A stretch of 64,000 bases of DNA from Thalia democratica (GCA_965202585.1 OZ241830.1:32984001-33048000); one strand, 5' to 3'; shown: positions 17,447 to 64,000, counted from the first letter of the stretch. Made by a program: numbers and translations. Notes: generated from the letters alone by a model not told the origin.

Positions 17447-18227
17447 CAGTAGACTACCGCTTAAGTACGCACTTTTTTTAGTACGCACCCCGCCTTAAGT
17501 ACGCTCTTAATCCAGAAATACAAAAAAAATTCTAAATTTTCTCTATATTTTTTTCTAAATTCTTTATATATTTAGATCAAATTTAAATAAACAAATAACC
17601 TGAATTATTGCTTTCACAGATTTTTTGCGAGAATCAATTCTCATTTCAGCATCGAAAATCCTAAGAAGTTCTCTCATATTATCACGGGAGACATATGTTG
17701 GCTTTGGTGGTGCAACTTTTTTTTAAATTTTAATGTGACATAATAAAAAACTAGTAAACAACAAAAAAGTTAAAAAAACCTACAAGTACAACATAGTTAA
17801 GTCATAATTTAATTTTAATGTACACACATTGATGTTTTGAAAATGTTTGGTAAACACAATGTAGTTTGGTACCTCCCTCTAACAATACGAAATATGGAAA
17901 AAATTGCTTAATTTTTTTTTTTATATCATTGACTGACATTGACTTTCTATATTAAATGTATGTATTAATTATGTAGAAACTTTTAATAGAAAAAAATATC
18001 ATTTTAAAATCTATTAAAAAATTTTGCAGATTAGAATTATGTATTTAATGTTATTCAAAATAAAAAGACTAGTTTATTTGGCTTAACTATTTAGTGGCTA
18101 GTTGTAAGAAAGAAAACAAACAACTAAATTTCATATTATACTATGTCGTCAAAAAGTACGCACTACCCGTGCTAAGTACGCACTTTTTGGTCGGGTTCAA
18201 TTTGCGTACTTAAGCGGTAGTCTACTG
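17447..18227. mobile_element. Tc1/mariner-pogo-type MITE, 781 bp
   Basis: Perfect 25-bp TIRs (CAGTAGACTACCGCTTAAGTACGCA and its complement at 18203-18227), a TA duplication on both sides, and subterminal AGTACGCAC repeats at both ends. Confidence 0.92.
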
Positions 18228-23833: not shown

Positions 23834-23927
23834 ATGAGGTTTGCCTCATTAGGAAGCATTTTCCTTGCTCTACTATTGTTGTTAAGCTGCCACACTACTA
23901 ATGGACAAGATTCTACTGAGTCTAAAG
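23834..23927 (+). CDS. ITGB4: Integrin signal-peptide exon ([31 protein letters not shown])
   Basis: Hydrophobic core and a phase-1 donor that matches the PSI exon. An acceptor at 23811 implies an upstream non-coding exon or a trans-splice site. Confidence 0.85.
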
Positions 23928-26900
23928 GTTAAAAAGAATACTCCTTTAATGTATTTAAATCTGTGATTGGATATGTTTCAAAATTTGTTAGAAATTAGTT
24001 CCAAATAACCAAAATGATTGATTAATATATTGTTGATTTGATTTCCTTTAGATCTTTAATTAAACTCAACAGTTTGACTAGTTTTTGAAACACTAGTAAA
24101 TGAAAACCAAAACAAATATTATTGATGAAGTTTATAATTTTGAATTATTTTAAATCTTAGTTTAATTCAACCGTGAAATTTTTGTATTTATTTACTAAAA
24201 TAATCAAAATGTATGGAGAAAGACAAATATTTGACATATGCTCGTTAGAAAAGTTTACCTTAAGCAAAGTTTAACTTGTTTTGACTTAAATTTGCTTTGA
24301 TTGTAACATTTTTTGGTTTTGTATCTTTCTGAAAAAAAACTTGCTTTTAAAAAACGGCATTGTTCAACCTTTCACATTAAAGGTTAAAGCATGATTTATA
24401 AGTAGTTAAAAGTTGAAAAACTATACAACAAAACATATTTTTATTTTATGCTAAAGTGTTAATATAAAACGACAAAGTAAATAAAGTGAACAATTTTTTA
24501 AAAAGACTTTGTGAATGTCTTATGTGTAACAGAGATTAAAAATAGAATAAATTGTAAAAATTAATTTTATTTTTTATTCAAATCCTTGCAAAAAATACTA
24601 TTAAATGTAAAGTTTAAACAGCTGACTAAATATTCGCTAAAGATAAGCAAATGACAAAATGTATCAGTGTAAATAAATCTTTTTTGATGTATAAATGGTA
24701 AGAAGTAAAATTATTTTGCGGTTGTTATTTTTAAGACAGCTAAATTAATATTTTTTGTTTGTTTTAAAACATACAGAGTGCATAAAACCAAAATAATCCT
24801 TAAAATGGAAACTTTGCATTGAATAGATATTGTCACGTCTTAATTTAGTTAAACTGGTATGATATATATTTTTTCAAGGTTATATTTTTAGAAACTGTTT
24901 TTTAAATTTATCGAGAAACTTTTAATACTTATTCATTCAAGAGTACGTATTTTTAAACAAATCAGAATTAAAACAATTTTGACTTAAAACTGTAAAAAAT
25001 ACTAAACTTCATTAATACGAAACTCAAAAGAAAAGTTGTTTGTTTCATAGTGAAAACAGCTAGTGTTCAAAATATATTTTCCAGATATTTCTGTACTACG
25101 TGCTGCTTTTATTTGCTATTATTACGTCACAATCTAAACAATCATTTTGTTTCCCCATAGTAAGAATTTTACACAGCTAATCAATTATGCTTTTTCTAAA
25201 GGGTTTTGTACATTTTTTGATTTCTTGTTCAGTTTTTAAGGCACAAAATATTTTATTCATTGCGAAGAAAGCTTTTATGATAAAAATTTGCAATTGTTTA
25301 AATACAAATAATAAATGTTGTGAGTCAAACTATAAAAAAAACGTTCCTGTATTTGTTTTATCACAGTTTTATATTTAAATGATCAAAAGCGAGGGTTTTT
25401 TTTTGACAAACATAATTTAATAATATGTTGCTTAGTAAAACATTTATAATAGGTTACTGTAATTTCTTAACTAAAATCCTAGTAGTCACTATTTTAAGGA
25501 CAAGTTGAGCTTTTAAGATGTACTTAATCTATGGTGTCTTGTGTTTTTGTTTACTATTCCTTCAAAATAAAGTAAATGTTTATCACTTAGATACTTATGC
25601 TGGATAAATACTCAAGTATTTTTAAACAGATAAAGACAAAACAAACTTAAAATTGAAATTTTTCATGTTACCGCAAAACCTTTTTAGTATTTCAAACACT
25701 ATTAATTTTTTTTAATAATTAAAGAATATCTGCAAGAAATATATTATTTAAGACAATATAGTAAAATAGATAAAAACTGTAAAGAAATAACAAAAATCAA
25801 CTAAATAATTTTTCATTTCAGACCTGTGCAAAGCATCAGCTGGATGGCAATACTCCGCCTCCTCATCCAGGTATTTCTCCTCATCATCAGGAGGAGGTTT
25901 CTCCTACTCCATGTCGGAGTTAAGTGTTATTTGCGGGGATTCCCTCGTTCCGCAAGAGTGCATCAGAGCGCATCCGCAGTGCCAGTGGTGCGCGCAAGAA
26001 GTAAATTGATTTTATTAATTTCAAACTATTAAACTTTGTTGACCAAATATTTAGAGTGATTTTTATTTTAGGTTAATGAAAACTTTTACATAAGTTTACC
26101 AAGTATTTATAAAACTTTTCAACTATTTTGATGCACAAAAATTACTTTAAAATCATTTTTTAAGTCACATTTTTAACTCATAGTTTTATTTTTCCTTCTT
26201 ATTTTGGTATTTATCATGGTTCATTCTTAACTTTTATATTAATTAGTAACATTTTACAAACAAAACTTATCAATCATTTTGTAACAGTCTTAGTTTATTA
26301 TTATTCACGTTTGATAACTTAAAATATTATTACTTTTCATCAGTTGTTTCTTCAAAAGATCTTTGATAAAACTAAATTTTTTAATAATCTTTATAAACCT
26401 CAACATAGAGAAAAACTTGAATTTTTAGTTTAAAATCCTTTAACTTTTGTGAAAGCTTGCTTTTAAGTAAATACGTTTAAAGTTGTGGATATGTTTTAAA
26501 ATAGATAAAATTTCACAAAGTTAATAGAGTTTTTATTTCAAACTGTTTTTACTACTTCAAATGAAGCAGTTTAACTAAATTGTAATCAAAACTTAAAACA
26601 CTATTTTAAATAATTAAAATATTTTTTTTTAATACAAATTAGTTCATGATGCTTATATCTAGCTTAAACTTAAATTATATATATTTAATGAAGATTTATT
26701 GTCCAGAATTGTATTCTTTAACTGTAATCCAAAGTAAAACGGAAAAACCATAAAACACATAATTTATACTCTATACGGCTTTAGTATAATATCGAAATTC
26801 CTATATCATGTTCAAATATCCCAAAGTCATGAAGCGTAAGAAGAACTATCAATATGTTTAAACTTAGAATTTGTAGATTTTTTTTTGATAAAGTGAGAGT

Positions 26901-29900
26901 AGCAAAGTGGCAAAAAAACGTTTACTAAGTAAAACAGGAGTGATAGGTTGCTTATCTTTTAAAAGATAGTTTGAAAACTTATGAAAATGCTAAACAATGT
27001 TTTCTGAAAAAGCTGTTTTAAAAAAAGTTTTTATTCAGCTAAAGAAAAAAATCTGCATTTTTTCAAACTGAATAAAACATACACAATAGCTTTGTATATA
27101 AAAAATATTAGTTTGTAAATACAATATTTATGTTTTAAAATATCGGTAGAAAATAATTTATTTTAAATATCAAAAAAAACCTTACAATCTACGTTTATAA
27201 AATAAAAGTCAACTATAAGTGACCTTTTTTAAAAATTTTTGTTAAAAACGATTTTTGTTACAGCTATCTATATACATGTTTTTGTTTTGACTGGAATAAA
27301 ATACGACTTCTGTGTAATTTTCTTATTAATAGTAGAATTTAAGACACTTATTAAGCTTCATCAACACTAAACAGGGATTTAAAAAGAAAAGATGCAATGT
27401 GGAGAGCGTGCTGCAAGAACAAAACTGCACTCAGTTGGAAGTTGTCAAGTCGGAAGCCAAAGGGGAATATTATAAAGGCGAATACCAGCGATTTAACGCA
27501 AAATCTTCTCAGGTGGGTGAAATTTTGGAGATTTAAATTTTTCCACAAAGAGCAAATTATAAGCTCAGTTACAATAAATTATATGGTGTTAAGTAACAAA
27601 TAGATGAAGTAATAGCTGTCCTTTTTATTAAAAAAGCAAATTTTTCGAAATCTTTAAAGTTTATTTTACTTAAAACAGACAAATGCTTTACTTTAATTTG
27701 TAAGAGTTTTTAAAGCACTTGTGTTTAATTCAAAAATAAATTAAGTTTAGAAAATAGATATCTTAATTAAGCTTATAATTAAAATAACTAATGCATGCTT
27801 CTGTTAAAAGCAGATAATTTTTAAATTCGATCATCTTTTACAAAAAAAAAAGTTATTAATAAGAACACATGTTTCCAAAATTTTTTTTTCAGCTTCACAC
27901 AAGTGACTATAAAAATAAATTTCATTATAGTTTGAACTTCAAAACCTACTTTAAAACAAAATATTACTAACATAATTGCTGTTCAGTTTTTATTCGCTCA
28001 AGCATAACGAAATTTACAGGTTATTAAAGGTTAAAACGCTTTGGAAATAGCAATAATTTAACATGAACTAGATAAAACACTTAGGCGTAATTTGTTTAAA
28101 TTTGCAGCTTTATTTAGATTAAAACATAAACATAAACAAACTAAGTTGCAATCTAGGTAAATTAATAGTTGTCAGAAGATACGCTTAACTAATTAATTAG
28201 TTATAAAGTATTCTTACACGTGGAAATAATGTATACAAATATAATCAACATTCAATTATGACGTATAACGATATCAGATAGTTTATCTTTGGAAAATGAC
28301 GCAAGCTTGCAAGCTCTTGAGATAGACAAAGTTGTTCTCTCTTTCGCACAGATAAAATTTACTTGTGATCGTTTTTGCTCGATTCTTTTTATATGAAACC
28401 TAATCTAACAATAATTAGTCATTTTCCAGGCTTAAATCAATACAAAATGGTTGTGTAAAGTAGATAAACTTTACCTAAAATAACTTACTCTAACTTTATT
28501 AATACTTTTTTAGTTTGAGTTGACACTCAAATTTAAATTTCAAGGTAAAAATTTAAATAAACAAAACAAGTAAAAAAAAAACTTCAAGCTGTTTTTTAAC
28601 AAAAAATTAAAAAAAACATCAAAAACGTTATTATATAACAGGTTTATACTACAAAAAAACTAAATCCTTAAAAGTCTGAATGTAAAATTAAGATAACCTA
28701 GTTTGTGGTAACTTTGTTTAAAAAATATTTCTTGATCTAAATAATATAAAAGATGAATTACTACTTCTACAAACATTGAAAGAGTTTAATTTTTGTTTTT
28801 AGTGTTATAGGCGTAAAACACAATTTTTTAAACAAGTTAGAAATACTTGCCAGACAAGCGACAATTAAATCTTGATTGAAAAATATAACTATACGATAAT
28901 TAATCATAGCTTTACTATTTAACTGTTTCATCTTTATCTTCAACAACTCTTTTTAATAGATATATTTTTGATATTTTTTGTTGTTATGTAAAAGTTTTTA
29001 GTTTTATAATTAACAAAATTTATAAATTGGTTTTGACATGTATTTGACTATTCTAAATACTCTTTTATATCAATGATAGTTATAGTTATACAAATGCTCA
29101 CATGAACTTATTGTTTTAAATACAACATTAAAAATTTATGCAAGCTATCATAAATTTTAGAATAATAATTTACCTTTATGGTTATTAAAGCTGTTAAAAC
29201 TTTTATCTATTAGTAAAACATTACGAAACTTGTAGCACTTGTAGAACTTTTAAAAACTAAAATAATTACCATCGGTTAAATTTTAAAAAAATTAAAAAAA
29301 ATCTTATTAGCTTCTAAATCAGTTGTTATACAGGTAAATGTACGCATCGGTGACACAGTACCATTTGAATTCAAAGTTAAAGAACCAGAAGTCTACCCTG
29401 TCGATTTGTACTACCTTATGGACCTTTCGTTCAGTATGAAGGACGATTTGAAAAATGTTAACAAACTCGCAATTAAAATTGGTTTGTTTTGTTTGAACTA
29501 TAGAAAAATTAACAAAGTTTTTTATAACTTTTGCACTATGAGTTTTATAAAAGTTGAAATATATTAAATCAAACAAACAAAAACAAAAAAATGTTGTCTA
29601 AAAATAACTCAGAATTTGTTTTGATTATTTAATAAAGTTTTACATAACGTTTATAAAATTTTTAGTAATTGTTAAAACAAAAACTTTTCATTATAATATC
29701 AAAGATTTTTACTAATACTTCTTCAGTTGAAACACTTAAAATGCTGACATCTGGAGCCGACGGAACCGTCAGATTGGGATTCGGAACTTTTGTTGATAAA
29801 GTTCAAAGCCCCATGACACAAATGACACCTTACAAGTTCGTTGCATTATTAACACTATCAATTTAAAAACAAAATCAAGTTATTTTGTTGAAATTAAAAA

Positions 29901-32900
29901 ATTACATCAAATTATTTTCTAAGTTGTTTATATTAGTCGAATTTAGAATTTTTATCAAAAAATTAGTTTTACTGATCTGCTGAAAATCAAACAGACCTAA
30001 ATATGACAATTACGGTGACTTAGGACTAAAATTTGGTTTACAGAGCTTAACGCTAAAAAAAAAACTATCGTTTGAAACAATATGTAAGGTTTTCAACAAA
30101 ACTCCAATTTCTTCATTTACAAATATTTTTCAGACTGCAGCACCCATACTTTAACGACACGGAGCCACCCTTCTTATACGAGAACAGGATAGGGATGACA
30201 GACAACATCACCCTGTTTCAGGAAGTCGTGGGTGACGTGAAAGTTTCAGGTAACCTGGATCCCCCAGAAGCCGCACTGGATGCCATGTTGCAGGTATGAT
30301 TGATGTTTGGTTTAAAATTGCTTTTATTTGCTACGATATGATAAACACAAAAATAAATAATATTGTTCTTAAAATACGTTTATTTTTTGAGTTGGTTAGC
30401 TTAATATTGTAAATTTATTCTAGCGTAAAATAAATTTAGTAGTAAAACTAAATTATATCAGGTGGCGAAATGCAACGATCTGATTGGTTGGAAGGGTGAA
30501 GCTTTGAGGTTGATGCTGGTTGCCACGGAATCAGCTTATCACTACGGGGGTGACGGTATGGACAAGATGGCAGGGTTCACCAGGAGCAACGACGGTGAAT
30601 GCCACACCGACAAGGAAAACGGAAAGTTAGTTTCTTATAAGGGGAATTAAATATAATTTTGATTTGTTTATAACTTTCATACTTTTAATTTACTTGAATT
30701 TTTATAATTGTTTACTTCGATTTATTGGCTAGATAAAAGTTACTATGTTTAACGACATTTAAATCATCTTTGATTTTTGAACAGTGAAGTTTATTTCAAG
30801 TTTGATAAATAAGCAAACAAACTAAACCTTATATTTGTGTCTTTTATGAGCATTAAAGTTGAAATTGTGCCAACTTTCGATTTTTGAATGGTTTTAGGAT
30901 TAATTAAATTTATCAAAAAAGTTATTTTATTAGTTATTTTAGTGCTTTTAAGACAATATAATTAATCAAAACTTTAATACAAAAAATATCTTTAAAACTA
31001 TAACTTTTAGAAAAAAATATAAAAATGTTTTAAGGTATTAACTTTACAGATATATGGACGATGGAACAATGGACTACCCAACAATCACACAAGTAGTAGA
31101 TGCAGTAGAAGAAAGCTCCATTACACCGGTATTTGCTATCGGAAGAACTTACGAAAACATGTACCAGGTTATAAGAACTATTTTTTACTTATATTGTAAC
31201 AATATTACTTTTCACAGCTCTTAATACGATTATGAGCACCATGTAAGATTTTTAATGGTGGAGTTGTTTTATACTCATAGAATTTTTGTTAATTTTTTTT
31301 TAGTCATACTACTGTACAAACCGAACGACTAAGATAATACATTGTCCATCAATTGTTTATGACGCAGTAATTAAAACTTAATATTGCTAAAGTTTAGGTT
31401 CGTTATTTTTTTTATATGTGTTGATTCTATTTTTTGAAAACTAGTATTAGAAGTTTTTAATCACCAACGTTGTGGAATTATTCTACAAAAAATTGTATTA
31501 TTATTTAATCAAATTCATAAAAAATCAAAGTTTTTTTAGTTGTTGTATAACATCTTTTATTTCACTTAAGCAATTTTTGAATTTATTGAAAGTTATATGA
31601 TTTATTTTTGTTGTCTAAAATCTATTTGAATTTACAAAAAAAAAAGTTTTCAACTAGTAGTAATTTGTTATTTGATTGCCATAATTTAAATATGTGCTTT
31701 GAGTTATAAAAAACTACATACTTTCACAGTTAGTTTACATTATGAGGCGAACATTTAAAGCTTAACTGTCAAATAAGACAAGTTAAAAACACTTTTCTTC
31801 ATACATAAACAAATCTAACGCGAGTAAACAAAACAACTTCTAAATCAATTTTATGAATGAAAATAAGCAAGCTCTGACTAATTTTGACATTTGTAAACAA
31901 CAACTACAAAAAACAATTTAAAATCTCTGTCTCAAGTATCTAAGTATGTATCAACAAACTTAATTCAGTGCTTACGAATATCACAAACATTTTGAAAAGA
32001 TTATAAAAGTTTGGTTTAAACCCTTACAACTACTTTTATCTTAATAGTTGATGTTTTAAACATTATATGCTACTTAAGTTTGCTAAGCTAGTTTGGTGTT
32101 TATTCATTATTAACAATTTAGGTAATTAATCAACAAATGTTCAAAATTTTGAATACGTTATTTTTGTAACAGCACGTCTCGAAGAATGTATTCAAAGGTT
32201 CAACATTCGGAGTATTGAAAAACGATTCAAGTAACATAGTAGACCTCGTTGAAAAGGCGTATCTAGATATTTCTGGTTCGTTTTGAATAAAACTCTTCAA
32301 CTTTTATTTGTATACTAACGTATTTGTTACAATTAAATAACACGTTATATTTTTTCAACAAAGTACCATAATACAAATACTTAAAGAACTAAATTTTCAA
32401 AATAAATTGTTTTTTTTAGTAGTGAGATAAGAACTTAACTATATCCTACTAATAAATTACATAATTTATGAGCAAAAGTAATTAACAAAAACGTTATTGT
32501 AATACTTGCAATAACAGGTCAGCAGGATCTTAGGACAGCCAATCCGAACGAAGATAACTTGTGTGTGTGGTATGATGTACAGTTACCTTACAAAAACGTA
32601 AAAGATACATTGGAAGTTTCAAACGCTGTTGTCACAAAACTCAAGTCCGGTGACGAGGTAAGCGTGTTGTGATGACGCAGAAGTGTTAGAGGTCTAACTA
32701 ATCAGTTTAAACAATAGAGTTTTCATTGTTACTTAATTAGATGTGCTAAGCTTAGTAATCAGATGGCACATCAATCCTCTTTATAAAACAGTATAGGTGA
32801 TTTGAAAACATAGTTTAAAATTTTACGTTTTTAATATAAAAACTAGGTGAAATACGATATGAACATCAATGCGAACTTGGAAGCTTGCGATAAATCAGCT

Positions 32901-35900
32901 CTGAACTGTTCAGGAGGCGTCATCAGCCTGAAAACTAGGAAGTACGAGGAAACGTTGCCTGTTGAAACCACCATACTAGCTGCATTCGGCTGCTCTGAAT
33001 TCGTTGAAGTAATAAATTAAATATTTGGTCACTTTAAATTAATATTGTTGTTTCACTTTACATTGTTGTTTTTGAAAACCAAGAATAACTATAAGTTAAT
33101 TGTACATTAATTTCGAGGTAAAAACGTTGATATATTAACATAAGTGTTGTTAAATTTTGTATAATATTTAAAATACCGGAAAAAAAAGATAATAGTTTTG
33201 CTATGCTTATGTATTTAAAACCAAAGCTTTATTAAACAACTTTTAAATTTACACAATATATCTATACATTTTTTAACATTCATTGAAATAATGTTTTTTA
33301 TAGGAAAACAGTGCAAAATGTAGTGGCAGAGGTAACTTTTCCTGTGGTATCTGTTTCTGCCCTACTGGCTGGCTCGGCATTGCATGCGAGAAAAGCACGA
33401 TTCCTAAAGGGTGCATTGGTCATGACGGAAAAACATGTTCAGGTTAGTTTTTGTAGATTCATAGTTTTCTCACTAGTTAGTTTTAACTTGATAGTCATTT
33501 TGCCATAAAACATTATTTAAAAAACCTTTAAAGAGGTATTTAATTCTGTGTTAAAATTGCGGGTTATTTTTTTCAAGCTTTGTAAGTTACGCTCGATTTA
33601 ATTCATTAAAGTTCGGTTTAGTGTATAAACTTAGTGGTGTGAAACTTTAGTCTAGTTTTATACTTATTAAAACTAATTTCAATAGGATAATGTGCTGAAA
33701 AAAACTTTTTTTAAGTTGTACATATGCTTAAAAACCATTATATTTCAAAAAAAGTTTTCAAAGTTTGTTTGGTAAACAAAGTGAGTTTAATACTTAATTT
33801 AACGTTTAGTGTGACAAAATTTTATTTAGAGCGAAGTAAATGTTTAGAAATAACATACTTTTTAAAAGGTGCACTAATATAACTCTTGTTTTAAAAGATG
33901 TTTAACTATTTTGAAAAAAATATGAAAATTTGAAACAGACACGAATCAGTGAATGTATTATATATCAGATTTAAAGCTTTGACATAAAAAACATTTAATT
34001 TTAGAGCGAGGCGATTGTTCGCCGATAACAAACGAGTGTCAGTGTTTTCCCGGGTACAACTATAATAAGGAGCGGATATACGGGGACTTCTGTGAGTGCG
34101 ATGAGTGCCCGAAAAACGCGGGAGTCGTCTGTAGTGGACACGGAACGTAAGTTAAACTTTCTTATTTATTTTAAGAGTAGTAATTACAATTTTTTTAAGT
34201 ATACTTTTGTTTACTTTAAAGAGTTTGTTTTCAGACTTTAAAATACTGTTAAACCAAAAGATAAAAAATAAATTTTTCTAAATGGTTTGAGAGTTGCTAA
34301 CAAAATATACTACTTATCTGTACTTTTATGCAAACAGTGGTTTTCCTAAATTCATTTAAGATTTTTTATATATTGTCTAGAACTTTTCAGTTTTAAATAA
34401 CATTAAAAATTATTTAGTTACAGTAAAAATACAATTTACACTCAAAATACCATCAACGCGACAAATTTATGCTTTACCAGTTTTATACAAAAGCTTCCAC
34501 ATTCAAACTGCAACAGTTTATTAAAATTTCACCTTTTTACAATTCAAATGAAATAGGCCCACCAAGGTGAGAGAGTGCGGGTGCGAGTGCTTGTGCGACG
34601 AGGGGTGGGGCAGGATCGACTGCAGCTGCAGCATGTCGCGGCTCACGTGCACCTCTCCCGCGGGGGCCATCTGCAGCGGGAAGGGCGTCTGCAAGTGCGG
34701 GACCTGCAAGTGCGAGACCGGGTACACCGGGCCCTACTGTACCGAGTGCATAGAAGGGCCTAACAATGTTAGTTGTTGCAAATGTTGTGAATATGTTTGG
34801 TGTTTTGTTCGTTATGTTTGAAGATATTGATAAAATTTGAATTGTGGCTGAACTTTTTTTTTCTTTCGTTTTGACTTTTTACAAGTTAATTTGAAAATAA
34901 AGGTGTTTGATTATATGCATAATAAATGAAAATAACATTTAAAAACTTTATCTGCAACTTTTTAATGAATTGTAGATTTATGCAAATGAAAATTTTACAA
35001 CATTTGTTTATTTTAATAACAAAAAAAAACTTTAACTGGCATCTAAAATATTTTAAGTTAAGTTACAAACATGTATAAACTGGAATAGAGATCTTTAAAC
35101 CAAGATTAGACATAAAAAAATGTGTTTGTAGATAACTTTTACAAAAAGTGTATCTAATCCATATATTCATACTCAAACGACAATATAACACAAACTAAAA
35201 AATATAAAATGATACAAAAGTGTTACAAAACCTAAGTTTTCTTTTACTTTAACCCAACTATGCTTTACACAGGAATGTCCAAGCTGCGACAAGTTTGAAA
35301 ACTGTGTCAAGTGCACCATGCACGGTACCGGACCTCTGCGAGAAAGCTGCGCGGAATCGTGCCCTCATCCCATACAAGCAGCAGATGTTTACTCGCTCGA
35401 CGACGGTTGGTTTGCAGAATAATTACTCATGCGTGCGATAATCTATTTGAACTTGAAAGTTTACTTTGAACAAAAATGTGAACAAAAAGTTTTTTAACAA
35501 CTAGCTAAACCATTTTTTTTTATTTCAATTGAGTTACCCAACAACGCATAAAACTTTAAACCAATATATAAACATATATTTTTGTAAACTAATATTTTGA
35601 CATTGAACTTTGTAGAAGTACTTGACCGTGTAAAAAATAATTAACTTTTTTTACGCTTTAGCATTCAATGAAAATAAAATATCACCCGGAAATAAGGCAC
35701 ACGTTAACGAAGTGTAAAATTTAAATTATCATCAAATTGCAGAGGAAGCAGATAAAAGGGGGATGACGCTGTGCAGTAAAACTGACCCGCTTGACGACTG
35801 TGCTTTTTACTACGAGTTTGCCACCATCGGAGATGACGAGTACACCATCATTGCTGAGAAAAATAAACGTTTGTATCATATGTACTTTATTTCAGTTTAG

Positions 35901-53900: not shown

Positions 53901-56900
53901 TGAAAAGTTTTTTTAAATAAATAGTCATATTTAAAAAATTAACATTTTCTTGTTTATAAACACTTTGGTTTATATTATAAGTAGATAAACAAAGTTGAAA
54001 CAACATTGAGCTGCTTTGTAAGTTTTAATGCAGTTGTACTAACATAGAACACTAAAAATAACAATTTTAGTTAGAATGTTTCTCTATAAATTAGTTTAAA
54101 CAAAATTTAAAGTTATTTTTAACTTTTTAAAATTTTTGCAAATACTAATTTTCACATTAATTGTTTGCAATAAATTATGATAAAAACATCCCATTCAGAT
54201 CGTACCAGCTTCAGATGCTGCTTCATTCTCCACTATGATTGGACAAAACGGAACAATTGAGTTTGAAGACGAACAAAGCTTCGGTGAAATTGAAATAAAA
54301 TTCCCTGAAGACACAGTCGAGGAACAAGAAGAGTTAGTTTATTTTGTTTTAATAGATTATTTTTTGACATTCAAACTTTGTAAACCAAGTATATTTAGAG
54401 TGATACTTTTGTAATACATCACTTGCTTAGCTTTTTTCATCTAGACTATATGTTTAATAAGAAAAAGAGTTACAAGTGGCGCTGTTGTATTATTCTGGAT
54501 GATTATGACAATTAATTACCTATCATTACTATAACAAAGTGTTGTGTTAGATTTTGACAAAGTGTTTCAATCAACAGAGTAATGATAATGCTTCTGCCAC
54601 CCGACGGTAGAGCTGACCTTTTGGACCCATACAAATCACATTTACTGGTAGACAACGACCTCCAGTGTTCAATCAATTTCACATCTGATGTTTATAACAT
54701 TCGTGGAGATGTGGACAGCTTTTTGTTGCCGCTTGTGAGGGACGGACCCAAGTACAGACCCATCACCGTCGCGTATAAAACTATTGGTGATTAAGTTTAT
54801 TGTAAAGACCATTTAAATTTGATTGTAAAAATTTTCTAATAAGTCATGTTTTTATTAATTTATTGCATTGAACTAACTAAGGTATTAATATTATTTTGTA
54901 ACGGCACAAAACCTGAGATTCTTAATTACAATTATTTTTAAATTAAAATTTAACTTAATTATTACTTTTACGTTGTTTAAAACTATTTATTCAAAACCGT
55001 ACTTACTATAAAAAATTTTGACAAAAGTAAGTCACCACATAGTATCACTATAATCAAAAACAGACGGAACAGCTATTGATTGCAAGAATTTCATCGGAGG
55101 CGACGGAGAGGTGGAGTTCGGACCTGGTGAGGTGAAAAAGGATATTTTGCTGCCTGTTATGAACGACAACCAGGGAGGTGTGCTGACATTCCAATGTCAA
55201 TTGACCAACGTGCAGAGTGGTGGTCCCGGAAAGATCGGTGTCATCGGGGACTGCACTGTCAATATTGAGAACATTCCTGGTCAGTTCTAACAAAATGTTT
55301 TAGAATAACGAGATATTGATAGTTTGTGCATTACCCAGTTGTTTTTGTCATTCATACTCAATTGACGAATTTTTACTTTCAAACGACAAAAGTTGTGATG
55401 TGAATTTATTCCGTAGACTGTTTAAAAGCTTACTTATTTGATTACTTTCAAGTATCTGAAAACTACGAAACAAAAACATAGGCTGTATTGTTTCACATTT
55501 AACCGTAATTTACTGACTTTACGATATCAATATAAAAGTATCCTTTTAAATATCTAATATTTTTATTCTCACAGCTGCGGGTCGTGTGGACATGTCATCT
55601 CCTGAAGTGATGACGAAGCAGAGCAGCGGAGTGGCGATGATCGGAGTGACAAGATCTTCAGGTAGGAAGGGAAGAGCGGAGGTTCCGTGGTTCGTGGAAG
55701 TCATACAGGGAACGAGTAAGGAGGATGATGACCACTACAACAAATTGGAAGGAAAAGTTGGTTTTTTGAAAAATCATTTTAAAAACTTACTGTTCAAAAT
55801 ACTTTTTTAGTGTTTTATTCATTTGTTTCAAATATTTATCTTTCAATAAATGATTTTGAAATACAATTTTGTTAGAGCACTATGTTTTTTTGTCAATTTT
55901 GATCAATTAGTGCTATTTAAGTAGATAAAGCTATACAATGTTATTTTTTGTTATCCAAGTTATCCAAACACGTTTGCATTATTTTTTAAAATTAATCCTC
56001 GTGAAAGCTTAAATCTAAAAGTTTAATTTGTAAACTAAATATAACTAAAGTACATTTTCATGTACCTAGGTTATAAGCTATACATTCTTCGCAGCTCATC
56101 TTCGAGGATGGGGAAACGGACAAAGTGATTGACGTCACGTTGAGCGACAAACCGAGCAATTATGACGTCACGATACTCGACGTCACATTGATGACGCCGA
56201 TTTCACAAGACGGTGTCGTTCTCGGTGATTCCCCAACTTCAAGAGTAACCGTCGACAATGACATTGGTTATTTTGAACTTATATACAAATAATGTAAAAC
56301 GTAAAACTAAGTTTTAAGCTTAAAGCATCAGTCTTTTTACAATTGTTTGAATTTCGCTTTTTAATTAAGCTATGAAAAATAAGTTACATGATTAAAACTG
56401 GGTTTACTAATAAAACTTTGGATGTTTTGATAATTTAAAGTTTTGACACCGAAAAACTCTTAAAAATTATTTAAAACAAAGCTGTATCTTAAAACTTTAT
56501 ATAAACAAAACAAAATTTCCAGACGCGGGCGTGATTGAAACGGAGCAGGAGCAGATAATAGTGTTTGGAACCGACGCAAACGTCAGGATTCCCATTCAGA
56601 GGAACGGACCGGGAGTCAGGTTTCCTGCTACTTGCACTTGGGAAGCTGAAGACGATACCGCAATCAGGGGCAAGCACTACAGAGCGTGGAAGGGAATCAT
56701 AGAGTTTGAAGAAGGAGAAAACAAGTTGGTGTATATTAAAAAAGAAAATTCTTAGTTTTGTAGTTTTATTTTACAACATTTCGTTTTGAAGTTTTTAATG
56801 GTCTATGAGCACAGAATGTTTGGAAAAGGTTTTTAACTTATAAATGAAGGTTACTTACTATTTAACGATGTATTGTTTTTTATGTTTAAAAACAAAGTGC

Positions 56901-59900
56901 TTTGATATAATGTAGATAAAGCTAACATAACTTTTATTGAAAACCAATGATCAAAGCTGCTTTGTATTTAAATTCAAGTTTTTAGTTTTAAGCTTTTTTT
57001 TAAAAGTTCTGTTAGCTATTTCCTTATACTACTAAATAAAATCGAAACAATTTAGCTTAGATTGTTTTCTATAGAATTTTTAAAAGTTTAAAAGTAGAAA
57101 AAGATATAGCAACAGTGGTGAAACAACAACTTTCATCAACAGAGGTGAAATTGTTATTCCAATCGCTAACGACCCGAGTGGTGACGTCATGTTTTTCAAC
57201 GTTAAACTCATTGAAGCGCAAAATGGCGCGAAAATTGGACCAATGAAAAACACGCAAGTTATGATCGATCACGTTGAAGGTTTGTTTACTTTAACTACAC
57301 TTAAACATCATTTCGAAAAAAAAATCTGTAAATCATTTTCAAATTATTTTTGATAGAAAGAAAAAGTTCTAACATAAAACAAAAACTTGTTTTTTATAAA
57401 ATTTTGATATAGTTGTTTTAAAACACAAAATTTGTAAAATAATCTTTAGAAAAAAATTGATGTCTTTAATAGATATACCGACCTTTAAATTTTTTTTTTA
57501 ATAATTCATTATCATAATTTGTATAAAATTTTACAATGTGTTGTTAAAAGCTTAAAGATAATAATATGTTACTTAAAACTCTAAACCGAAAATAAAACAT
57601 AATCATAATTTCAGAAAAGACCCAAGAAATTCTCGTACAACGACCTTGGAGCCCGGATGTGAACGTCGCTGGCGAGATATCATTCAGTGACGTCACAATG
57701 AAAGTGCAACAAAGCGAGGGAGAACTGGTTTGCAAGGTTTTGAGAAGTATTGAGAATGAGGCGAAGGGAAGAGTTGTGGTTCCTTGGAGCATCCAAGGAG
57801 GCGGTCCTTTGTACGAGGTTTGTAAAGTTTCATATTTTTTTTGAAAATTGTACGAAAGTAATTGAAACTAAATTTTTCAAAATATAAAACAAAACTTTTA
57901 AAATAGTTAAACAATGTTTTCTTGTGGTCTATAGGATAAACTATACTGTTCAAAGACTAAAATTAAAAACTATCAGCTTTTTTTAAATTTTATAAAGTTT
58001 TATAGGGTAAAAACTTTGTATTAAATTTTTACAAAAAGTAGATTGGGTTGTTTTTAAACGACTAAGTTAACTTGATAGTAAACAAGTTTTTTTTAAAATT
58101 AATTCAAACAAAATGAACAAATGACAGAAACTTTTCGGACAAGAGACTTTCAAAGAAGGTGAAACGGAAAGCCATATAAAAATTGAGCTGACAGACGCGC
58201 CTCTCCAAGAAGAAGAAAACAACTTCACGTATGTTTTGCTTACAAGCTGTTACAAGTTTTAACTACTTTAAATAAAATGCTACAACTTTATAATAAGTTA
58301 TGTTTAAAGCATATATTACAACTCGTTGTGTTTATATATACTAAGTAGCAATTTGTTAGCCACACATAATTTATTGATTAAAACTAAATTCAACAGCAAT
58401 TACTTTTAGCTTGAGGTTATTATTAATCAGTTGTTTTAAAATATAGGTACTGTCTTTAAAATAAAAAATAAGTTTTATTGCTTAAACAAACAGCATTGTG
58501 CTCGGCAAGCCAACCGGAGGATTTGCACTTGACGAAGATGCAAGCGAGTGCAAGGTGACGGTTGTGAATGACGCCAGGAAGGGAGAAATAAGCTTCGATA
58601 AAGATCAGATCACCGTGGATCAGTCGAGTGAAAAGATCGTCATTCCAGTACACCGAACTATCAATAATAAAAGTAAGTGTATATAAACACATTGGAAAGA
58701 GTAATTGTATCTAACTAATTAAACTTTAATTTTTTTTTGTAAGACATATTTTAAGGTACCCTTTAAATTAGAGTATCTAATAAAATAATGATTAACAAAA
58801 GTTAGTATCTAAAGTGAAATATATTTTATTCAAAAGTATTACAAACATTTAAAACCAAAGTTGTAGTGATTTCGTTATTAATATGAAAGTAGCTTAACTT
58901 GTTTGTTAAAAGTTTTAACCACATATACAAAAAATTATAAATTAAAGTTTACAAAAACTATATTTTTTACAGAGAAAGTTCGCGTTCAATGGAAAACAAA
59001 ATCTGTTGACGGTAAAGAAAACGGTTTCGACAACTTGTCTGGAATTGAGACGTTTTCAAGTGGCGAGGAACTTTCTCACATCGAGATCAAGATCGATCAG
59101 AAGCCGCTGGATAGTTCACAGGACACATTCGTCGTTGAGCTGATCGAACCAAAGAACATTTTTGCCACTTTGGGAGAAATTCCAACGTGCAATATTACGA
59201 TAAACAACGATATTGGTTAGTACTTAAAAAGCTTACAGGTATTTTTTTGTTTTAAATATGTAATTTAAAACCCTTATATAAATTTAATGTTACTAAGAAG
59301 ATATCAACAAAAAAAAAACATTAAATTAAAAGCTTTTTTAAAATCAACAAAACTTAAAAAAGTTGGGAAAAAGTTTTTTTTATTTTGAATTATTTCTTAA
59401 AATTTATAAACTCATAATGCAATTAGTTTAAAATAGTATAGATAAAATGTATCAAATCTCTAAAAAAGTTATAAAATATTCGAGAAATAAGCTTCATGTT
59501 AAAACAGTTGCTTATATTTTAGCACAAGCGGTGATAGACTTGAGTGAAACGAGCAAGCAAGTTAAACAGAGCGACGGCAAATTGCAGCTGAAACTATTGA
59601 GAACAAAACAACCGCTAGGTAGCGTGCAAGTGCCATGGAAAATTGAACCTGATAAAAACGATTCAGTTTACTATGATATAACAGGTCTATATGCTTGTTA
59701 TTTAGTACTACATGTAGTAATTGTTGAATTTAATATAACTCTAAAAGCTTTAACTTTTTTATTGAAAAAAAAAATTGTTATCGAGTTTATCAAAAAAATT
59801 AACAGTTTAAGAAGAATATTTTTACTAATTTTAACTTTTTGTTAAAACCGTTTAATTATTTTAAACATTTGATAGCTGCTATATCTAACTCAGAAAATAA

Positions 59901-62900
59901 TCGCATAAAGCCAAAAAAAAAAATAAAGTACTCTTTTTAATAACTACTTCGGAGCAAAATGTTTAAATAAAGTTCGAAAATAATGAAACTTAACTGTGAC
60001 GTCATAGGAGACGTGTTGTTACGCGACGATCAGATGGAGCAGGACATCGACATTCTCCTCCCAGAACTTCCACTGTCCAACAGTGAGGAGAAGGTGAAAG
60101 TGGTGTTGGGACACCCCATCAAATCTGCAGCCGTCCTCGGACCTAACCAGAGCTGTGACGTAACAATTCAACACGATCTTGGTAAGAATTAATATGTTTT
60201 TCTATTCATTAAAATCTAAACGTAGTAATTTTATTAAATGATATATGAAAATTATTTGATTACTAATGAATACCGATTAAGACATCGCAGAATTTTATCA
60301 GTTGAAGAAAATATGATTGAAAATAAGTACCTGAAAATACTTTAAACGATTAGTTTTAAACACTATAACAGCTTTATACTTAATAAATAAGTACTTAATT
60401 AAACTATCAGGACAAGGAATAGTCCAGATGGCGGCGGATGAAGTGACTTGTTCAAGCGAAGATGGAGAAGCTGTAGTGATTGTTAAGCGGGAAGTCGGAA
60501 GCGCTTTTCCCGCCGAAATTGATTGGATCGCCGAAGACGAATCAGCTGTTTTCAAAAATCATTACGAAATCAATGAAGGTGAATCTATAACTGTGTTAAA
60601 ATCTAAAAACTTCATCTCAAAAGTTGTAGTGATTAATCTATTTTAAGCAGTAGTGTTTAGATATTTCTTGCTTTTTAGCACTTAAATTTTATTTTAAGCT
60701 ATCTCTAGCTACTTTAGACAAAAACATTTGTAAGCAATATACTATATGGTACTTTATTGTGAATAAATATACACAAAAGTAATGTTTTTATACAGGTACC
60801 ATCAAGTTAAAGTCTGGAGAGTTGCAAAAAGCAATAAGAATTCCAGTTTTCAACGACCCAAGTGGTGAAACGTTTACTTTCAACGTCAATTTGCTTGAAA
60901 TCAGGGGCCGTGACGAACTCGGATTCAAAATCAACACTCAAGTTTCAATTGAAAACACTCCAAGTAAATACACAGTATTTTCTATAGTTTGATAACATTT
61001 GAGTTTGAGCTGAATTAACACAAAGTATTTTTTTAATCCACATAAAATTTTAAATCAAATTAAGCTTTATTTGTTGTAAATTGATGCGATACAAACCAAT
61101 TAAGAAGATTTATTTAAGTAAAACTATGCTTTAAACATACCTGTTTTAACCTAGAATGTATAAAAAACACAAAGTAAAAATCATTTTTACATTCATCTAA
61201 AACAGTAGCTAATTTTTAACTTAAAGTTTACAATAGTTTAAACCAGTGGTCGTCAAGGTGTACACTGGTGCACATTAGTGTACACAAAACTTTTTTTGGG
61301 TTGCACGAAATTTTTAGGTACACGAAACTCATTAAAGGGGGCACGAAATTTTGATATTACAAAAAAAAATACATAGAGTTAGGTTAAGTATGTAGTTAAT
61401 GTTTAATAAAGTATTTAAAGAATACTAAACTTGGGATTTTGTAGTAATTGCGGAGAAGTGTTTAATTAATAAGTATTTAGGATAAAGCCATATAACTAAA
61501 ACATCATTGTGAAAATAAGGTAAAACAAATAAAGAGGTCAATTAAAAAGAGTATCAAATAAAAAAGTTCAGCTTCAGTTCTTAAATGGTTTGCATGTAAA
61601 TACAAACTGAGTTATGACTTTTAAGGAGAAATGCACTAGTAAAAAATTTACGTAGTCCCGCCACTAGCGGTGCTTATTGAAATTAGATCTTGTTGTGCAC
61701 CAATTGTTATTTTTTACAGCTTTGCGTACACAGAATTTGATTAGCTTGACGACCACTGGTTTAAACTGTTCTAAATTATTTGACTTGCAAATTATTAACC
61801 TTAAAACTTTTCAGTGCTCCCCGGACCGGTGTTGGACTTCAAAGCGGGTCTGAACACTCCACAGACCATAGGAGCTTCGTGGTCTGCTCCCGAAGCAGGC
61901 GGTCCCGTGTCAGGATACCGGGTTTCATACTGGGACAAACCTGAAAACATCAAACAAGTCGAAGTCGCCAACGACGTGAGTAGTAGTAGTTGGCATTTTT
62001 GTTGAATTTATTACTTTTGTTAAGTTCTTATTTATAAATAGTAAGATATAAACTTAATTCGCAAAAAATAAGTCTTAAATAACTACGAAAAAAATTGTTA
62101 AAAAAACATGTTTAATCTAACAGATCAATGAAATAGAAATAGAAGACGTGAAGGCAAACACACATTACCAAATCAATGTCAGACCTTTTAACTCAGTTGG
62201 TAATGGACCAATTTCAGAAACACTAACAGTTGATACTCCACCAGGTATAAAGCAAAAGATGTATAAACTCAAGAATCTATTACTATTAAAATATGAACTA
62301 AGTTTTCATTATAAACTTCTTTTTTAACCAAACTACTATTAATATTAATAATATTAATAAACTACTAATTCTAAAATAATATTTAATACTCTTATAAAAA
62401 TAAACTTTTATGTGTACTAAACTTTAATTTTAATGATAGTGCACGGAGTGATATCGGTGGCTGAGGACAAGATCGAGTTGAAGCAGACAGACGGTAAACT
62501 GAAGTTAAAAATACTGAGGGAAGGTGAAAATAGGGGTAGGGTTGTTGTGCCTTGGATGGTTAAAACAACATTGCCGAAATCTGCTTACAAAGTTAGTGAT
62601 ACATGCAATTGATAACTAAAATTATAATTTACTATAATATTGTTTTGTTCTTTAACTGTTATGTTTTTAATAAGTTATAAATATAAAACAAACGTCTAAA
62701 AAAATTTCAAGAAAAAAAAAAGGATTTAAAAAAAAAATGATAACAAAATATTTTTTTTACTAGAATTCATTAAATATTTGAAGTATGACTTTTTTTCGCA
62801 GAACTTTAGCGGTCATGAAACTTTCAAGGACGGCGAAAAAGAGAGCACAATTAAGTTTGATTTACCCAGCAATCCTCAAAATAACGAAAAAGAAGACTTC

Positions 62901-63888
62901 AGGTAAAATCTGAATAAAGAGTTAATGTATGTTTAAACAACTAATCAACTTTGCGTCTTGCATCAAAATCATAACTAGTTGTTTTTTAGCTATAACTCAA
63001 GCTCCCTAATGATATCTGTTTTAGTAATGTAAAATAAGTTTCTTAAATAAATCTTTAAACATCAATTCAGCATCATACTGGGTCAACCCACCGGCGGCTC
63101 GGTCCTCTCAGAAAAGGCCGAGTGTCACGTCATAGTCACGCACGACATCCAGCCCGGAAAAATACAATTCCACAAACCCTCGTACGAGTTCAACCAGACA
63201 GATGTGGAGGTCGTTGTGAAGGTGGTGAGGTCGGTGAACTGCAGCGGAAAGGTCAGGGTTCCGTGGAGGGCCATTGTTGAGGACGATCAGTTTTCTCCCT
63301 ACATGGAAATCGGGGGTCACGAGACCTTCAAGAGCGGCGAGGAAGAATCTCACATCAAAATCAAGATTCCACAGGTGAGGATCGTTTAACCTTCTAAAAT
63401 ATATTTATTACAAGTTTTTCTACAACTAAAACAAGCTTTACCTTTAAAGAAATAAATGAATATAGTTAAAACTTTATTGCATTCGCTTGATTATAAAGAT
63501 TTTCAGTATTCATTTTTTAATGCTGTTTTTGATTACTTTAGTAAACCTTAAGGTTTAGCAGTTCTGTGAGTAAAAGTAAAAACAGCACAAAATACTTTTA
63601 AAATTTTACAGGATCCGCGCCCTGTCCTCAAGGACAATTTTAAGATCATCTTGATGAAGCCAAAACCTGATAGCAGCATCATTGACGCAGATTGCAGTTG
63701 TGACGTCACAGTTGTGAACGACATAACACCGGCAGTCATTGAAATGCTGGAGGAGGATGTTAAGGTGAAGCAGTCGGATGGAGAACTGTCATTACACGTG
63801 CTCAGGAGCGAGGAACTGAAGGGAAGGATCGTGGTTCCGTGGAAGATCTTGCCGGAAAGCGACGACTCCGTTTACATGAACGTCACAG
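23834..63888 (+). CDS. ITGB4: Giant integrin beta-4-like subunit, 3-prime incomplete: signal peptide, PSI, hybrid, beta-I, 4 I-EGF, beta-tail, TM, then at least 24 cytoplasmic Calx-beta domains and 1 FN3
   Basis: 68 GT-AG exons in continuous phase (11,317 nt): 23834-23927, 25822-26000, 27375-27512, 29334-29481, 29727-29835, 30134-30293, 30462-30625, 31050-31167, 32173-32275, 32518-32657, 32847-33008, 33304-33442, 34005-34146, 34557-34767, 35273-35405, 35743-35868, 36403-36591, 36799-36921, 37203-37287, 37521-37721, 37970-38124, 38341-38534, 39213-39402, 39756-39877, 40153-40327, 41406-41564, 42250-42435, 42819-42977, 43900-44082, 45835-45926, 46323-46526, 46824-47013, 47244-47437, 47739-47883, 48270-48436, 48783-48987, 49264-49587, 49878-50042, 50293-50460, 50520-50561, 50792-51088, 51337-51507, 51723-51863, 52035-52235, 52799-53002, 53302-53436, 53726-53844, 54199-54332, 54578-54786, 55064-55279, 55575-55756, 56095-56266, 56523-56724, 57143-57279, 57615-57817, 58128-58228, 58494-58672, 58973-59215, 59523-59684, 60008-60181, 60411-60578, 60796-60963, 61815-61975, 62124-62244, 62440-62591, 62802-62902, 63071-63374, 63612-63888. 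The symbol means beta-4-like. Confidence 0.93.
29334..32275 (+). CDS. ITGB4: Integrin beta-I (vWA-like) domain exons
   Basis: [19 protein letters not shown] (MIDAS DxSxS plus ADMIDAS DD), [43 protein letters not shown] and [10 protein letters not shown]. Confidence 0.97.
33304..35868 (+). CDS. ITGB4: Integrin I-EGF1-4 and beta-tail exons
   Basis: [54 protein letters not shown] and DDCAFYY. Confidence 0.95.
36403..36591 (+). CDS. ITGB4: Integrin transmembrane and juxtamembrane exon
   Basis: [40 protein letters not shown]. This is the only long hydrophobic helix after the signal peptide. Confidence 0.95.
36799..60963 (+). CDS. ITGB4: Cytoplasmic Calx-beta domains 1-21
   Basis: Repeated motif series: GxixF..y.v.e..G...i.v.R..g..G...v.W.t....A..g.dy....GtlxF.dGe....i.i.....f.v.L..p.gg..lg...v.i.nD. 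Domain boundaries mostly coincide with phase-1 introns. Confidence 0.9.
40757..40851 (+). CDS. Candidate alternative terminal exon after Calx-beta 3 ((V)[30 protein letters not shown])
   Basis: TTATAG acceptor in a phase matching the donor at 40327, 31 open codons, GC-richer than the surrounding intron, and ATTAAA downstream. Confidence 0.4.
53045..53097 (+). repeat. Intronic tandem duplicate of the 3-prime end and donor of the exon ending at 53002
   Basis: ATGACCGGTACTGTTGTGTTCAATGATGGTGAAAGTTTGTATA|GTGATTGTT versus ATGAACGGCACCGTTGTGTTCCAAGATGGGGAAAGTGTTAAAG|GTGATTGTT located 85 nt upstream. Confidence 0.8.
61244..61758. mobile_element. hAT-family MITE, 515 bp, in the integrin intron just upstream of the FN3 exon
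   Basis: 14-bp TIRs CAGTGGTCGTCAAG / CTTGACGACCACTG, a perfect 8-bp TSD GTTTAAAC (61236-61243 and 61759-61766), and subterminal GCACGAAA and TGTACAC repeats. Confidence 0.93.
61815..62244 (+). CDS. ITGB4: Cytoplasmic fibronectin type III domain (2 exons)
   Basis: PGPVLDF...SWSAP...[11 protein letters not shown]...[33 protein letters not shown]. Confidence 0.93.
62440..63888 (+). CDS. ITGB4: Calx-beta domains 22, 23 and the first half of 24; the gene continues beyond the window
   Basis: Same motif series as domains 1-21. The last exon ends at a phase-1 donor (ACAG|GTAATG) with no stop codon. Confidence 0.9.
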
Positions 63889-64000
63889 GTAATGAAAACT
63901 TATTTATAATAAACACTTAAAAAAGTTTGAGCAACTAGCTGTTGTTAATCATCAATATTTTGATTTGCTTAATATACATGTCTGTGATTATGTTTTTACA

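Follow-up and report, generated by a model that had tools for sequence, protein, structure and literature searches.

A probable giant integrin beta-4 orthologue with a titin-scale Calx-beta/FN3 tail in the tunicate Thalia democratica

Can one gene join an ordinary integrin ectodomain to an intracellular rod of more than a hundred beta-sandwich domains, or do two neighbouring genes merely give that appearance? Conventional integrin beta chains end in a cytoplasmic tail of ~47 residues with HDRR and NPxY/NxxY motifs (the Pfam family Integrin_b_cyt). Beta-4, the core of the hemidesmosome, has an odd tail of ~1,000 residues that is treated as a vertebrate feature; the vertebrate ITGB4 protein, of ~1,750-1,920 residues, belongs to the hemidesmosome receptor alpha6beta4. 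The question is raised by a stretch of 64,000 nucleotides from the tunicate Thalia democratica (GCA_965202585.1 OZ241830.1, here G000:C6:32984001-33048000, plus strand), which we call the window; positions above 64000 are window-equivalents (C6 coordinate minus 32,984,000). We conclude that the window very probably holds the 5' part of a one-gene giant orthologue of beta-4, and we establish its architecture, its membership of the beta-4 clade, purifying selection on all its parts, and the transcription and splicing of its 3' end.

The window is 28% G+C and contains no N. Exons were chained by dynamic programming, with codon log-odds, GT-AG site matrices and bookkeeping of phase and of stops in split codons, and without use of the exon list of the initial annotation, which had described a phase-continuous open reading frame (ORF) of 68 exons at 23834-63888. 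This independent search recovered all of these exons exactly and made the same predicted join, 36591 > 36799, after the exon for the transmembrane (TM) helix. The chain starts at ATG 23834 and its last exon ends at 63888, with no in-frame stop and with the frame open at the window edge; G+C is 48.4% in its exons and 23.2% in its introns. A search retrained on added downstream DNA retained all 68 exons and extended the chain beyond the window, where the first exon starts at 64161. After correction with RNA joints, the full model comprises 213 exons and runs to 13,640 codons without internal stops (~1.5 MDa) and ends at TAA 129528-129530 (C6:33113530), with AATAAA ~45 nt downstream. The gene spans 105.7 kb, 65 kb of it past the window edge, and the window contains the first 68 exons, encoding residues 1-3772. 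The least secure of them is exon 40 (50520-50561), a 42-nt micro-exon predicted by the chain search only, between two Calx-beta exons and after a 59-nt intron. A 62-nt 'exon 69' at 63939-64000 in the first search was spurious and was superseded by the extended model. A run without end penalty beyond 129.1 kb likewise gave spurious exons, including the antisense of a minus-strand gene, and the end was set by the RNA joints.

The 5' part of the model, all on the plus strand, encodes a complete integrin ectodomain as initially annotated, with PSI, hybrid, beta-I, four I-EGF and beta-tail domains in the order expected from Pfam. Exon 1 (23834..23927), where the chain starts, carries the start codon and a signal peptide (hydrophobic window, residues 1-19), and exons 2-3 (25822..27512) carry the PSI domain, with a partial PSI_integrin match (E 1.2e-4), and the start of the hybrid domain. 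The beta-I (VWA) domain occupies exons 4-9 (29334..32275), over which the Pfam Integrin_beta VWA profile is tiled in order by its positions 2-31, 41-63, 76-121, 123-172, 174-212 and 215-244 of 248. Its DxSxS metal ion-dependent adhesion site (MIDAS) is present as DLSFS, phmmer against PDB returned a match to integrin beta-1 (E 5e-8), and the alignment reveals the beta-4-type 'TES...DG' motif with an insert of two residues. Exons 10-16 (32518..35868) encode the second half of the hybrid domain, the four I-EGF modules and the beta-tail domain, with I-EGF_1, EGF_2, EGF_integrin and Integrin_B_tail matches; exon by exon, the Pfam order over exons 2-15 is PSI_integrin, Integrin_beta, then I-EGF_1, EGF_2 and Integrin_B_tail.

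Exon 17 (36403..36591) encodes the membrane helix and a Cys-rich juxtamembrane segment, CCWRCC. The only hydrophobic windows in the whole 13,640-residue product are the signal peptide and residues 757-780, in agreement with the single helix described before. The initial annotation had named, as findings that would speak against its reading, a further TM segment placing the repeats outside the cell, or Calx exons in a separate gene with its own promoter or signal peptide; the hydrophobicity scan found no second TM segment and no internal signal peptide across the product. One TM helix after an N-terminal signal peptide implies type I topology, which places the tail of ~12,850 residues in the cytoplasm, and the absence of a second TM helix or internal signal peptide rules out an extracellular Calx-beta array. 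Cysteine makes up 1.2% of the tail versus 6.7% of the ectodomain, and the tail is acidic (isoelectric point ~5). Of the juxtamembrane motifs, LLCCW is common to our model and to its environmental relative P0111 (see below), and CW(K/R)CC to our model and lamprey beta-4. As also remarked at the outset, the tail has no membrane-proximal NPxY (none within 80 residues after the helix), and exon 17 has no Integrin_b_cyt match; lamprey beta-4, when scanned, was likewise without such a tail.

The array starts in exons 18-62 (36799..60963), which encode ~22 Calx-beta domains, the first of them split by an acidic insert; they were identified with Pfam, with our own hidden Markov models (HMMs) and by collinearity with two environmental contigs (L012 and L028). 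Exons 63-64 (61815..62244) encode the first FN3 domain (Pfam fn3 in two exons; FN3 HMM at residues 3401-3495), which opens a super-repeat of 541 residues, and exons 65-68 (62440..63888), known from the exon chain, encode Calx-beta domains of its first unit, after which the gene continues past the window. In a single-exon Pfam scan, 15 of 50 window tail exons matched Calx-beta (PF03160) and two of 50 fn3; Calx-beta matches reached E 7.8e-13 on single exons, and a 3-kb exon further downstream scored 150.7 bits. Iterated domain HMMs found 24 Calx-beta and one FN3 domain in the window part (residues 1-3772), bearing out the earlier count of at least 24 Calx-beta domains plus FN3. The tail length of ~3,000 residues given with that count fits the window part and understates the whole: on the spliced product, the same kind of iterated HMMs gave 113 beta-sandwich domains in ~12,850 residues, 94 of them Calx-beta and 19 FN3.

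Beyond the proximal Calx-beta domains, the tail continues with 15-16 units of one FN3 and four Calx-beta domains, so regular that the FN3 HMM, after its first match, finds a further one every 541 residues. There follow FN3-Calx-FN3, 11 Calx-beta domains largely in the 3-kb exon (120928-123927), a Ser/Asp/Lys-rich linker, a Calx-beta domain at 124134-124484, two FN3 domains at 125411-126942, and ~190 Lys/Glu/Ser-rich residues. The super-repeat units are 39-65% identical to each other, most are exactly 541 residues long, and they have a common exon pattern of 174/168/168/161/121/152/101/176/402 nt; their introns cannot be aligned. This divergence, together with the unalignable introns and the constant length, points to old duplications under length constraint rather than to a recent blow-up or an assembly artefact.

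In NCX-type CBD1 domains the E-F loop contains a cluster of acidic residues (DDxxxExxE), and DDD follows strand G. The consensus of the 94 Calx-beta domains, ...PLPQDPSGKTKESF..., is without the acidic cluster of the NCX-type loop, which makes Ca2+ control of the predicted tail doubtful. A strict scan for the NCX Ca2+ motif gave 0 of 94 domains, the scan being crude enough to miss an NCX-like string in proximal domain 2; a few membrane-proximal Calx-beta domains look NCX-like.

To which beta chain does this protein correspond? In a maximum likelihood tree of 37 ectodomains, the model groups with two environmental proteins, P0111 and P0136 (SH-like approximate likelihood ratio test, SH-aLRT, 99), and these three join four vertebrate beta-4 chains from lamprey, sturgeon and teleost (SH-aLRT 98, seven rows), leaving the 30 other beta chains outside. 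The clade has its own signature in the alignment, 'TES(A/W)(F/Y)H..DG' plus the two-residue insert, where other chains read 'TDAxFHxAGDGK-LGG', and the best full-length ectodomain match is lamprey beta-4. A phmmer search with exon 7 against 1.84 billion cluster representatives returned 130 proteins, the long ones being lamprey, hagfish and fish beta-4, a fused amphioxus model and P0111. About six integrin beta loci are present in the genome.

The other end of the protein gives the same answer. The best PDB matches of the terminal FN3 exons are integrin beta-4 FnIII domains (E 3.5e-11 and 3.4e-10), and the terminal Calx-beta (124134-124484) and both FN3 domains also match Pfam. Residues 1023-1358 of lamprey beta-4, comprising Calx, FnIII-1 and FnIII-2, align with residues 13173-13477 of the model (E 6e-27), so that the predicted terminal Calx-FnIII-FnIII is homologous to, and collinear with, the plectin-binding part of beta-4. 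The arginines in PNRLAF and YRSLLVEGL line up with those of vertebrate PGRLAF and KRxxLIENL, presumably human R1225 and R1281. Plectin binding is lost in the human R1225H and R1281W mutants (PMC4452579). No connecting segment or FnIII-3,4 pair was recognised after the two FN3 domains, and the ~190 Lys/Glu/Ser-rich residues there have no Pfam match. By its clade, its Calx plus FnIII-1,2 and its lack of an NPxY tail, the predicted protein is a beta-4.

Set against vertebrate beta-4, the model is alike in its ectodomain clade and beta-I signature, in its single TM helix with Cys-rich juxtamembrane segment, in having a tail of Calx-beta and FN3 domains in place of the NPxY type, and in ending with a module collinear with Calx/FnIII-1,2 that has both plectin-contact arginine positions. 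It differs in domain number (94 Calx-beta versus one, 19 FN3 versus four), in the ~12,300 extra residues, with their 541-residue super-repeat, that separate the FnIII-1,2-like pair from the membrane, and in having the Lys/Glu/Ser-rich C-terminus and no recognised connecting segment or FnIII-3,4.

Whether ectodomain and array belong to one polypeptide was addressed through relatives. The Logan contig L012 matches residues 69-1666 of the model in a single high-scoring segment pair (frame 2, 983-5845; E 1e-163) within an uninterrupted ORF of 1875 residues (P0111), and the ENA contig L028 (P0169; frame 2, 10286-17776) aligns with residues 69-2590 (E 0), with a gap of ~96 nt between two ORFs. Both encode the beta-tail domain, a TM helix ending in LLCCW, a first Calx-beta domain that an acidic insert interrupts, and a second Calx-beta domain, as in the spliced model, and the pairwise alignment of relative and model is collinear across the exon 17/18 region. 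With TM helix and array in one frame, these relatives have one polypeptide without any assumption about splicing. They are also the nearest relatives in the tree, alike in ectodomain, TM helix and multi-Calx-beta tail; their loci differ in being compact and nearly intron-less, and the sequences are only 26-28% identical to the model. The available parts of P0111 and P0169 gave no FN3 match. In addition, both ends of one known protein flank the array: the beta-4-type ectodomain and the beta-4-type FnIII end lie ~100 kb apart on the same strand.

Another contig from JGI, L027 (P0135, 61% identical), was rejected as evidence on the junction: it is palindromic and chimeric, and contains the beta-I domain only, stopping short of the TM helix. 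On L012, a tetraspanin-like ORF (6509-7462) separates the integrin/Calx ORF from more Calx-beta ORFs of the same strand. In vertebrates, alpha6beta4 acts together with the tetraspanin CD151; the position of the ORF on L012 may be coincidental, or the ORF may represent a nested gene.

A second copy of the locus, on haplotig C130 (~98% identical to C6), provides a measure of selection. Over 114 gap-free exons the two copies have 290 synonymous and 99 nonsynonymous codon differences, distributed as 39:7 in the ectodomain, 86:25 in the proximal tail and 165:67 in the distal tail. All parts of the gene are under purifying selection, with nonsynonymous differences at roughly a tenth of their neutral share. 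C130 (96,011 bases; L018-L025; corresponding to ~21,700-64,000 of the window and beyond) ends inside the super-repeat array, without the 3-kb exon, and is most likely the other haplotype; the silent-site difference of ~6% between C6 and C130 implies very high heterozygosity. At ~65,470-70,820 it contains ~5.2 kb of extra DNA in intron 75 (66823-66984, 162 nt on C6), probably an inserted mobile element rather than a further unit of the repeat.

RNA evidence comes from the 3' end. Sequencing runs matching the 3-kb exon include one from the same organism (X6) and two marine metatranscriptomes (X4 and X5). Contigs from X6 and X4/X5 skip nine GT..AG introns in 123927-129426, with zero depth inside, and a DNA run (X2) covers those same introns. 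Six of the nine predicted junctions were exact, and at another the acceptor had been misplaced by 6 nt; two small low-complexity linker exons were wrong, and the last exon was added from the RNA. The X6 and X5 RNA contigs also contain a minor extra exon at 124577-124883 (L026:1577-1883), between the terminal Calx exon and the first of the terminal FN3 exons. That stretch has no listed open frame of at least 45 residues, and the exon may mark an unproductive or regulatory isoform.

Several points weigh against a single giant product. Exon boundaries within the window are predictions, and where RNA allowed a check, at the 3' end, their error rate was measurable; the tree came from a quick search with SH-aLRT support only and has long branches; P0111 and P0169 are known from environmental contigs only; and the conserved arginines were assigned to R1225 and R1281 by 1QG3 chain-index arithmetic, an equivalence that we assume. 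The central point concerns intron 17 (36592..36798). No RNA was found across 36591 > 36799 or any 5' exon, and the three runs that match 36300-40400 are all DNA-like, with even depth over introns. Donor 36591 (GTTTTA) and acceptor 36799 are weak, and the unspliced frame, read from the sequence, stops at 36620-36622 in a codon overlapped by AATAAA. With such sites and such a stop, a short-tail isoform of conventional length could exist and might even predominate. Tunicates use spliced-leader (SL) trans-splicing and operons, so a downstream cistron starting at exon 18 may also be considered.

Taken furthest, these points would lead to two genes: an integrin beta with a tail of ~45 residues ending at stop 36620, and a separate giant cytosolic Calx-beta/FN3 protein starting at or after exon 18, possibly the downstream cistron of an operon trans-spliced at 36799, the in-phase join being accidental. 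The stop and AATAAA directly past the donor, the weak splice sites, the junction without RNA coverage and the tunicate host would all accord with this. It is nevertheless very improbable: two relatives of the same clade have ectodomain, TM helix and Calx array collinear with the spliced model in a single open frame, and a beta-4-type ectodomain and a beta-4 Calx/FnIII-1,2-type C-terminus flank the array on one strand. Moreover, exon 18 starts mid-domain, and its sole Met (YLMRK) would cut the first Calx-beta domain short, while the 45-residue read-through tail has neither NPxY nor an Integrin_b_cyt match. The claim of one integrin beta gene with a long intracellular Calx-beta/FN3 tail is therefore upheld by the frames of the relatives, by the beta-4 clade and by the lack of a second TM helix.

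A milder alternative keeps one gene and makes its giant form a minor one, with a mostly short tail from retention of intron 17 and polyadenylation, or a medium form from titin-like skipping of super-repeats. The AATAAA at the read-through stop would suit the former and the unit of 1623 nt, a multiple of three and so skippable in frame, the latter; the 3' end has one minor alternative exon, and the RNA-like run X6 shows the 3' exon with no 5' exons detected. A short-tail isoform ending at 36620 alongside the giant form is quite possible, if not what we expect. That the giant form is the minor product we consider rather unlikely, since every part of the array is under purifying selection and unit length is strictly kept despite 35-60% divergence between units, which argues for translation and use of the entire array; the missing 5' exons in X6 are equally expected from 3' bias on a 41-kb mRNA. 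Finally, an array so repetitive and unusually long, with no annotated counterpart of such size found, could be suspected of being an assembly artefact, the outcome of recent runaway duplication in tandem, or a pseudogene decaying downstream of a normal integrin. We give this hardly any credence: there is no stop in 13,640 codons, units 39-65% identical with unalignable introns denote old duplications, the independently assembled haplotig has the same exons at ~3:1 synonymous to nonsynonymous differences, spliced RNA contigs occur in three runs, and the 3-kb exon has a 61%-identical relative of 1013 residues in an environmental contig.

If one giant gene is accepted, what might its tail do? The beta-4-type head would pair with a laminin-type alpha chain and bind matrix outside the cell. 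The tail could form a long, possibly elastic tether which, at ~4 nm per domain, the generic figure for beta-sandwich folds, would measure ~0.4-0.5 um if extended, and its far end would present a plakin/intermediate-filament-binding module distant from the membrane. The initial annotation had imagined the tail as acting in place of plectin-type linkers; here it does not agree with the C-terminus, which retains a module of the beta-4 plectin-binding type including both arginine positions. With that Calx-FnIII-FnIII module kept, the rod would more likely stand in series with a plakin linker, between the membrane and a plakin/intermediate-filament anchor. Plakin binding by the terminal FnIII pair is putative; in the genome, plectin repeats occur at four or more loci, alongside several intermediate-filament loci. 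We advance this tether-to-plakin mechanism, with its putative binding, extension and elasticity, tentatively and with somewhat less than even confidence.

The strict 541-residue period suggests binding to something periodic. Five domains would measure ~20-22 nm, near the axial repeat of intermediate filaments, and the super-repeat could then be a molecular ruler, the tail lying along a periodic cytoskeletal polymer and organising it over ~0.3 um, in the manner of titin on the thick filament. Such a reading is speculative and improbable; were it true, an adhesion receptor would carry its own filament template and spring, with a plakin-binding module at the end.

Long tandem Calx-beta arrays are found in ADGRV1/VLGR1, in FRAS1/FREM and in the sponge aggregation factor MAFp4 (PMC11670116). 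Those arrays are extracellular, in contrast to ours, which follows the only TM helix and is cytoplasmic. The likeness to titin, twitchin and obscurin is functional only: a megadalton chain of ~100-residue beta-sandwiches, super-repeats of fixed length and exon sets that can be skipped in frame. Our model differs from them in using Calx-beta rather than Ig domains, in having no kinase and in being a covalent part of a transmembrane receptor, and we claim no homology.

In Ciona, Ewan et al. 2005 placed Ci_beta5 as a beta-4 orthologue, left its long tail undecided, and noted short Calx-like ORFs within 10 kb 3' of the gene (PMC1145181). Ci_beta5 resembles our locus in being the beta-4 orthologue of a tunicate and in the Calx-like ORFs on its 3' side, and differs in that the 2005 paper gave no gene model, size, FN3 domains or super-repeat (PMC1145181). 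Full-text literature searching returned nothing beyond Ewan et al. 2005 on a giant tunicate beta-4 or on cytoplasmic Calx-beta arrays, and protein searches with exon 7, the 3-kb exon and P0111 returned fragments only and no annotated counterpart of similar size, current Ciona gene models not being covered. A database model of similar size may thus exist unremarked for Ciona. The initial annotation had left novelty subject to a database search: a tunicate beta-4 with 3' Calx-like ORFs had been noted in 2005, and no earlier description seems to exist of the size (1.5 MDa, with 94 Calx-beta and 19 FN3 domains), of the super-repeat, or of a beta-4-type end module set 12,300 residues away from the membrane.

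On the one-gene reading, the locus answers the question on the tunicate beta-4 tail left open by Ewan et al. 2005 (PMC1145181). In the sister group of vertebrates there would be a beta-4 orthologue whose tail is twelve-fold longer, built of the same two domain types and finished with the same plectin-binding-type end. A Calx/FnIII tail on a tunicate beta-4 implies that such a tail predates vertebrates; vertebrate beta-4 may have kept just one Calx-beta domain of a former array, or the array may have expanded in tunicates. The protein is far larger than any integrin we found described, and as a naturally occurring fusion of a transmembrane receptor with a rod of titin scale it would allow direct tests of spacing, elasticity and the templating of filaments at cell-matrix junctions, which is of interest to integrin and hemidesmosome specialists.

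Some related database entries carry other names. The search with the 3-kb exon gave one match, the 1013-residue fragment P0138 (61% identical, on a 3,140-bp NCBI contig), which is publicly labelled 'Calx-beta domain-containing protein [Planctomycetota bacterium]' from a metagenome-assembled genome and is a mislabelled fragment of this family; the beta-I fragments P0001 and P0135 (JGI contig L027) are mislabelled 'syndecan 4'. The search with P0111 returned environmental relatives only. Three amphioxus 'Integrin beta' models (Branchiostoma; P0103, P0133 and P0134; 2,658-2,797 residues) have two ectodomain stretches with a Calx-like region of ~320 residues between them. They may be fusions of tandem genes, and a Calx-tailed integrin could occur in cephalochordates too.

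Downstream, the next gene is apparently on the minus strand at 134,400-137,100, with an open frame of 320 residues at 136134-137093. Elsewhere in the assembly, COX1-like stretches at C4:56.84-56.95 Mb and C757:31.3-32.1 kb contain many stops of all three kinds and are nuclear copies of mitochondrial DNA, present besides the intact mitochondrial COX1 on contig C1833. The best matches of the latter are marine metatranscriptome proteins of Tara type at 86-91% identity, in keeping with an animal that is probably pelagic. It has AGA/AGG at invariant Gly positions (FGHPEVY, GGGDP, LAGxSS) and in-frame TGA, which is the ascidian code 13 of tunicates.

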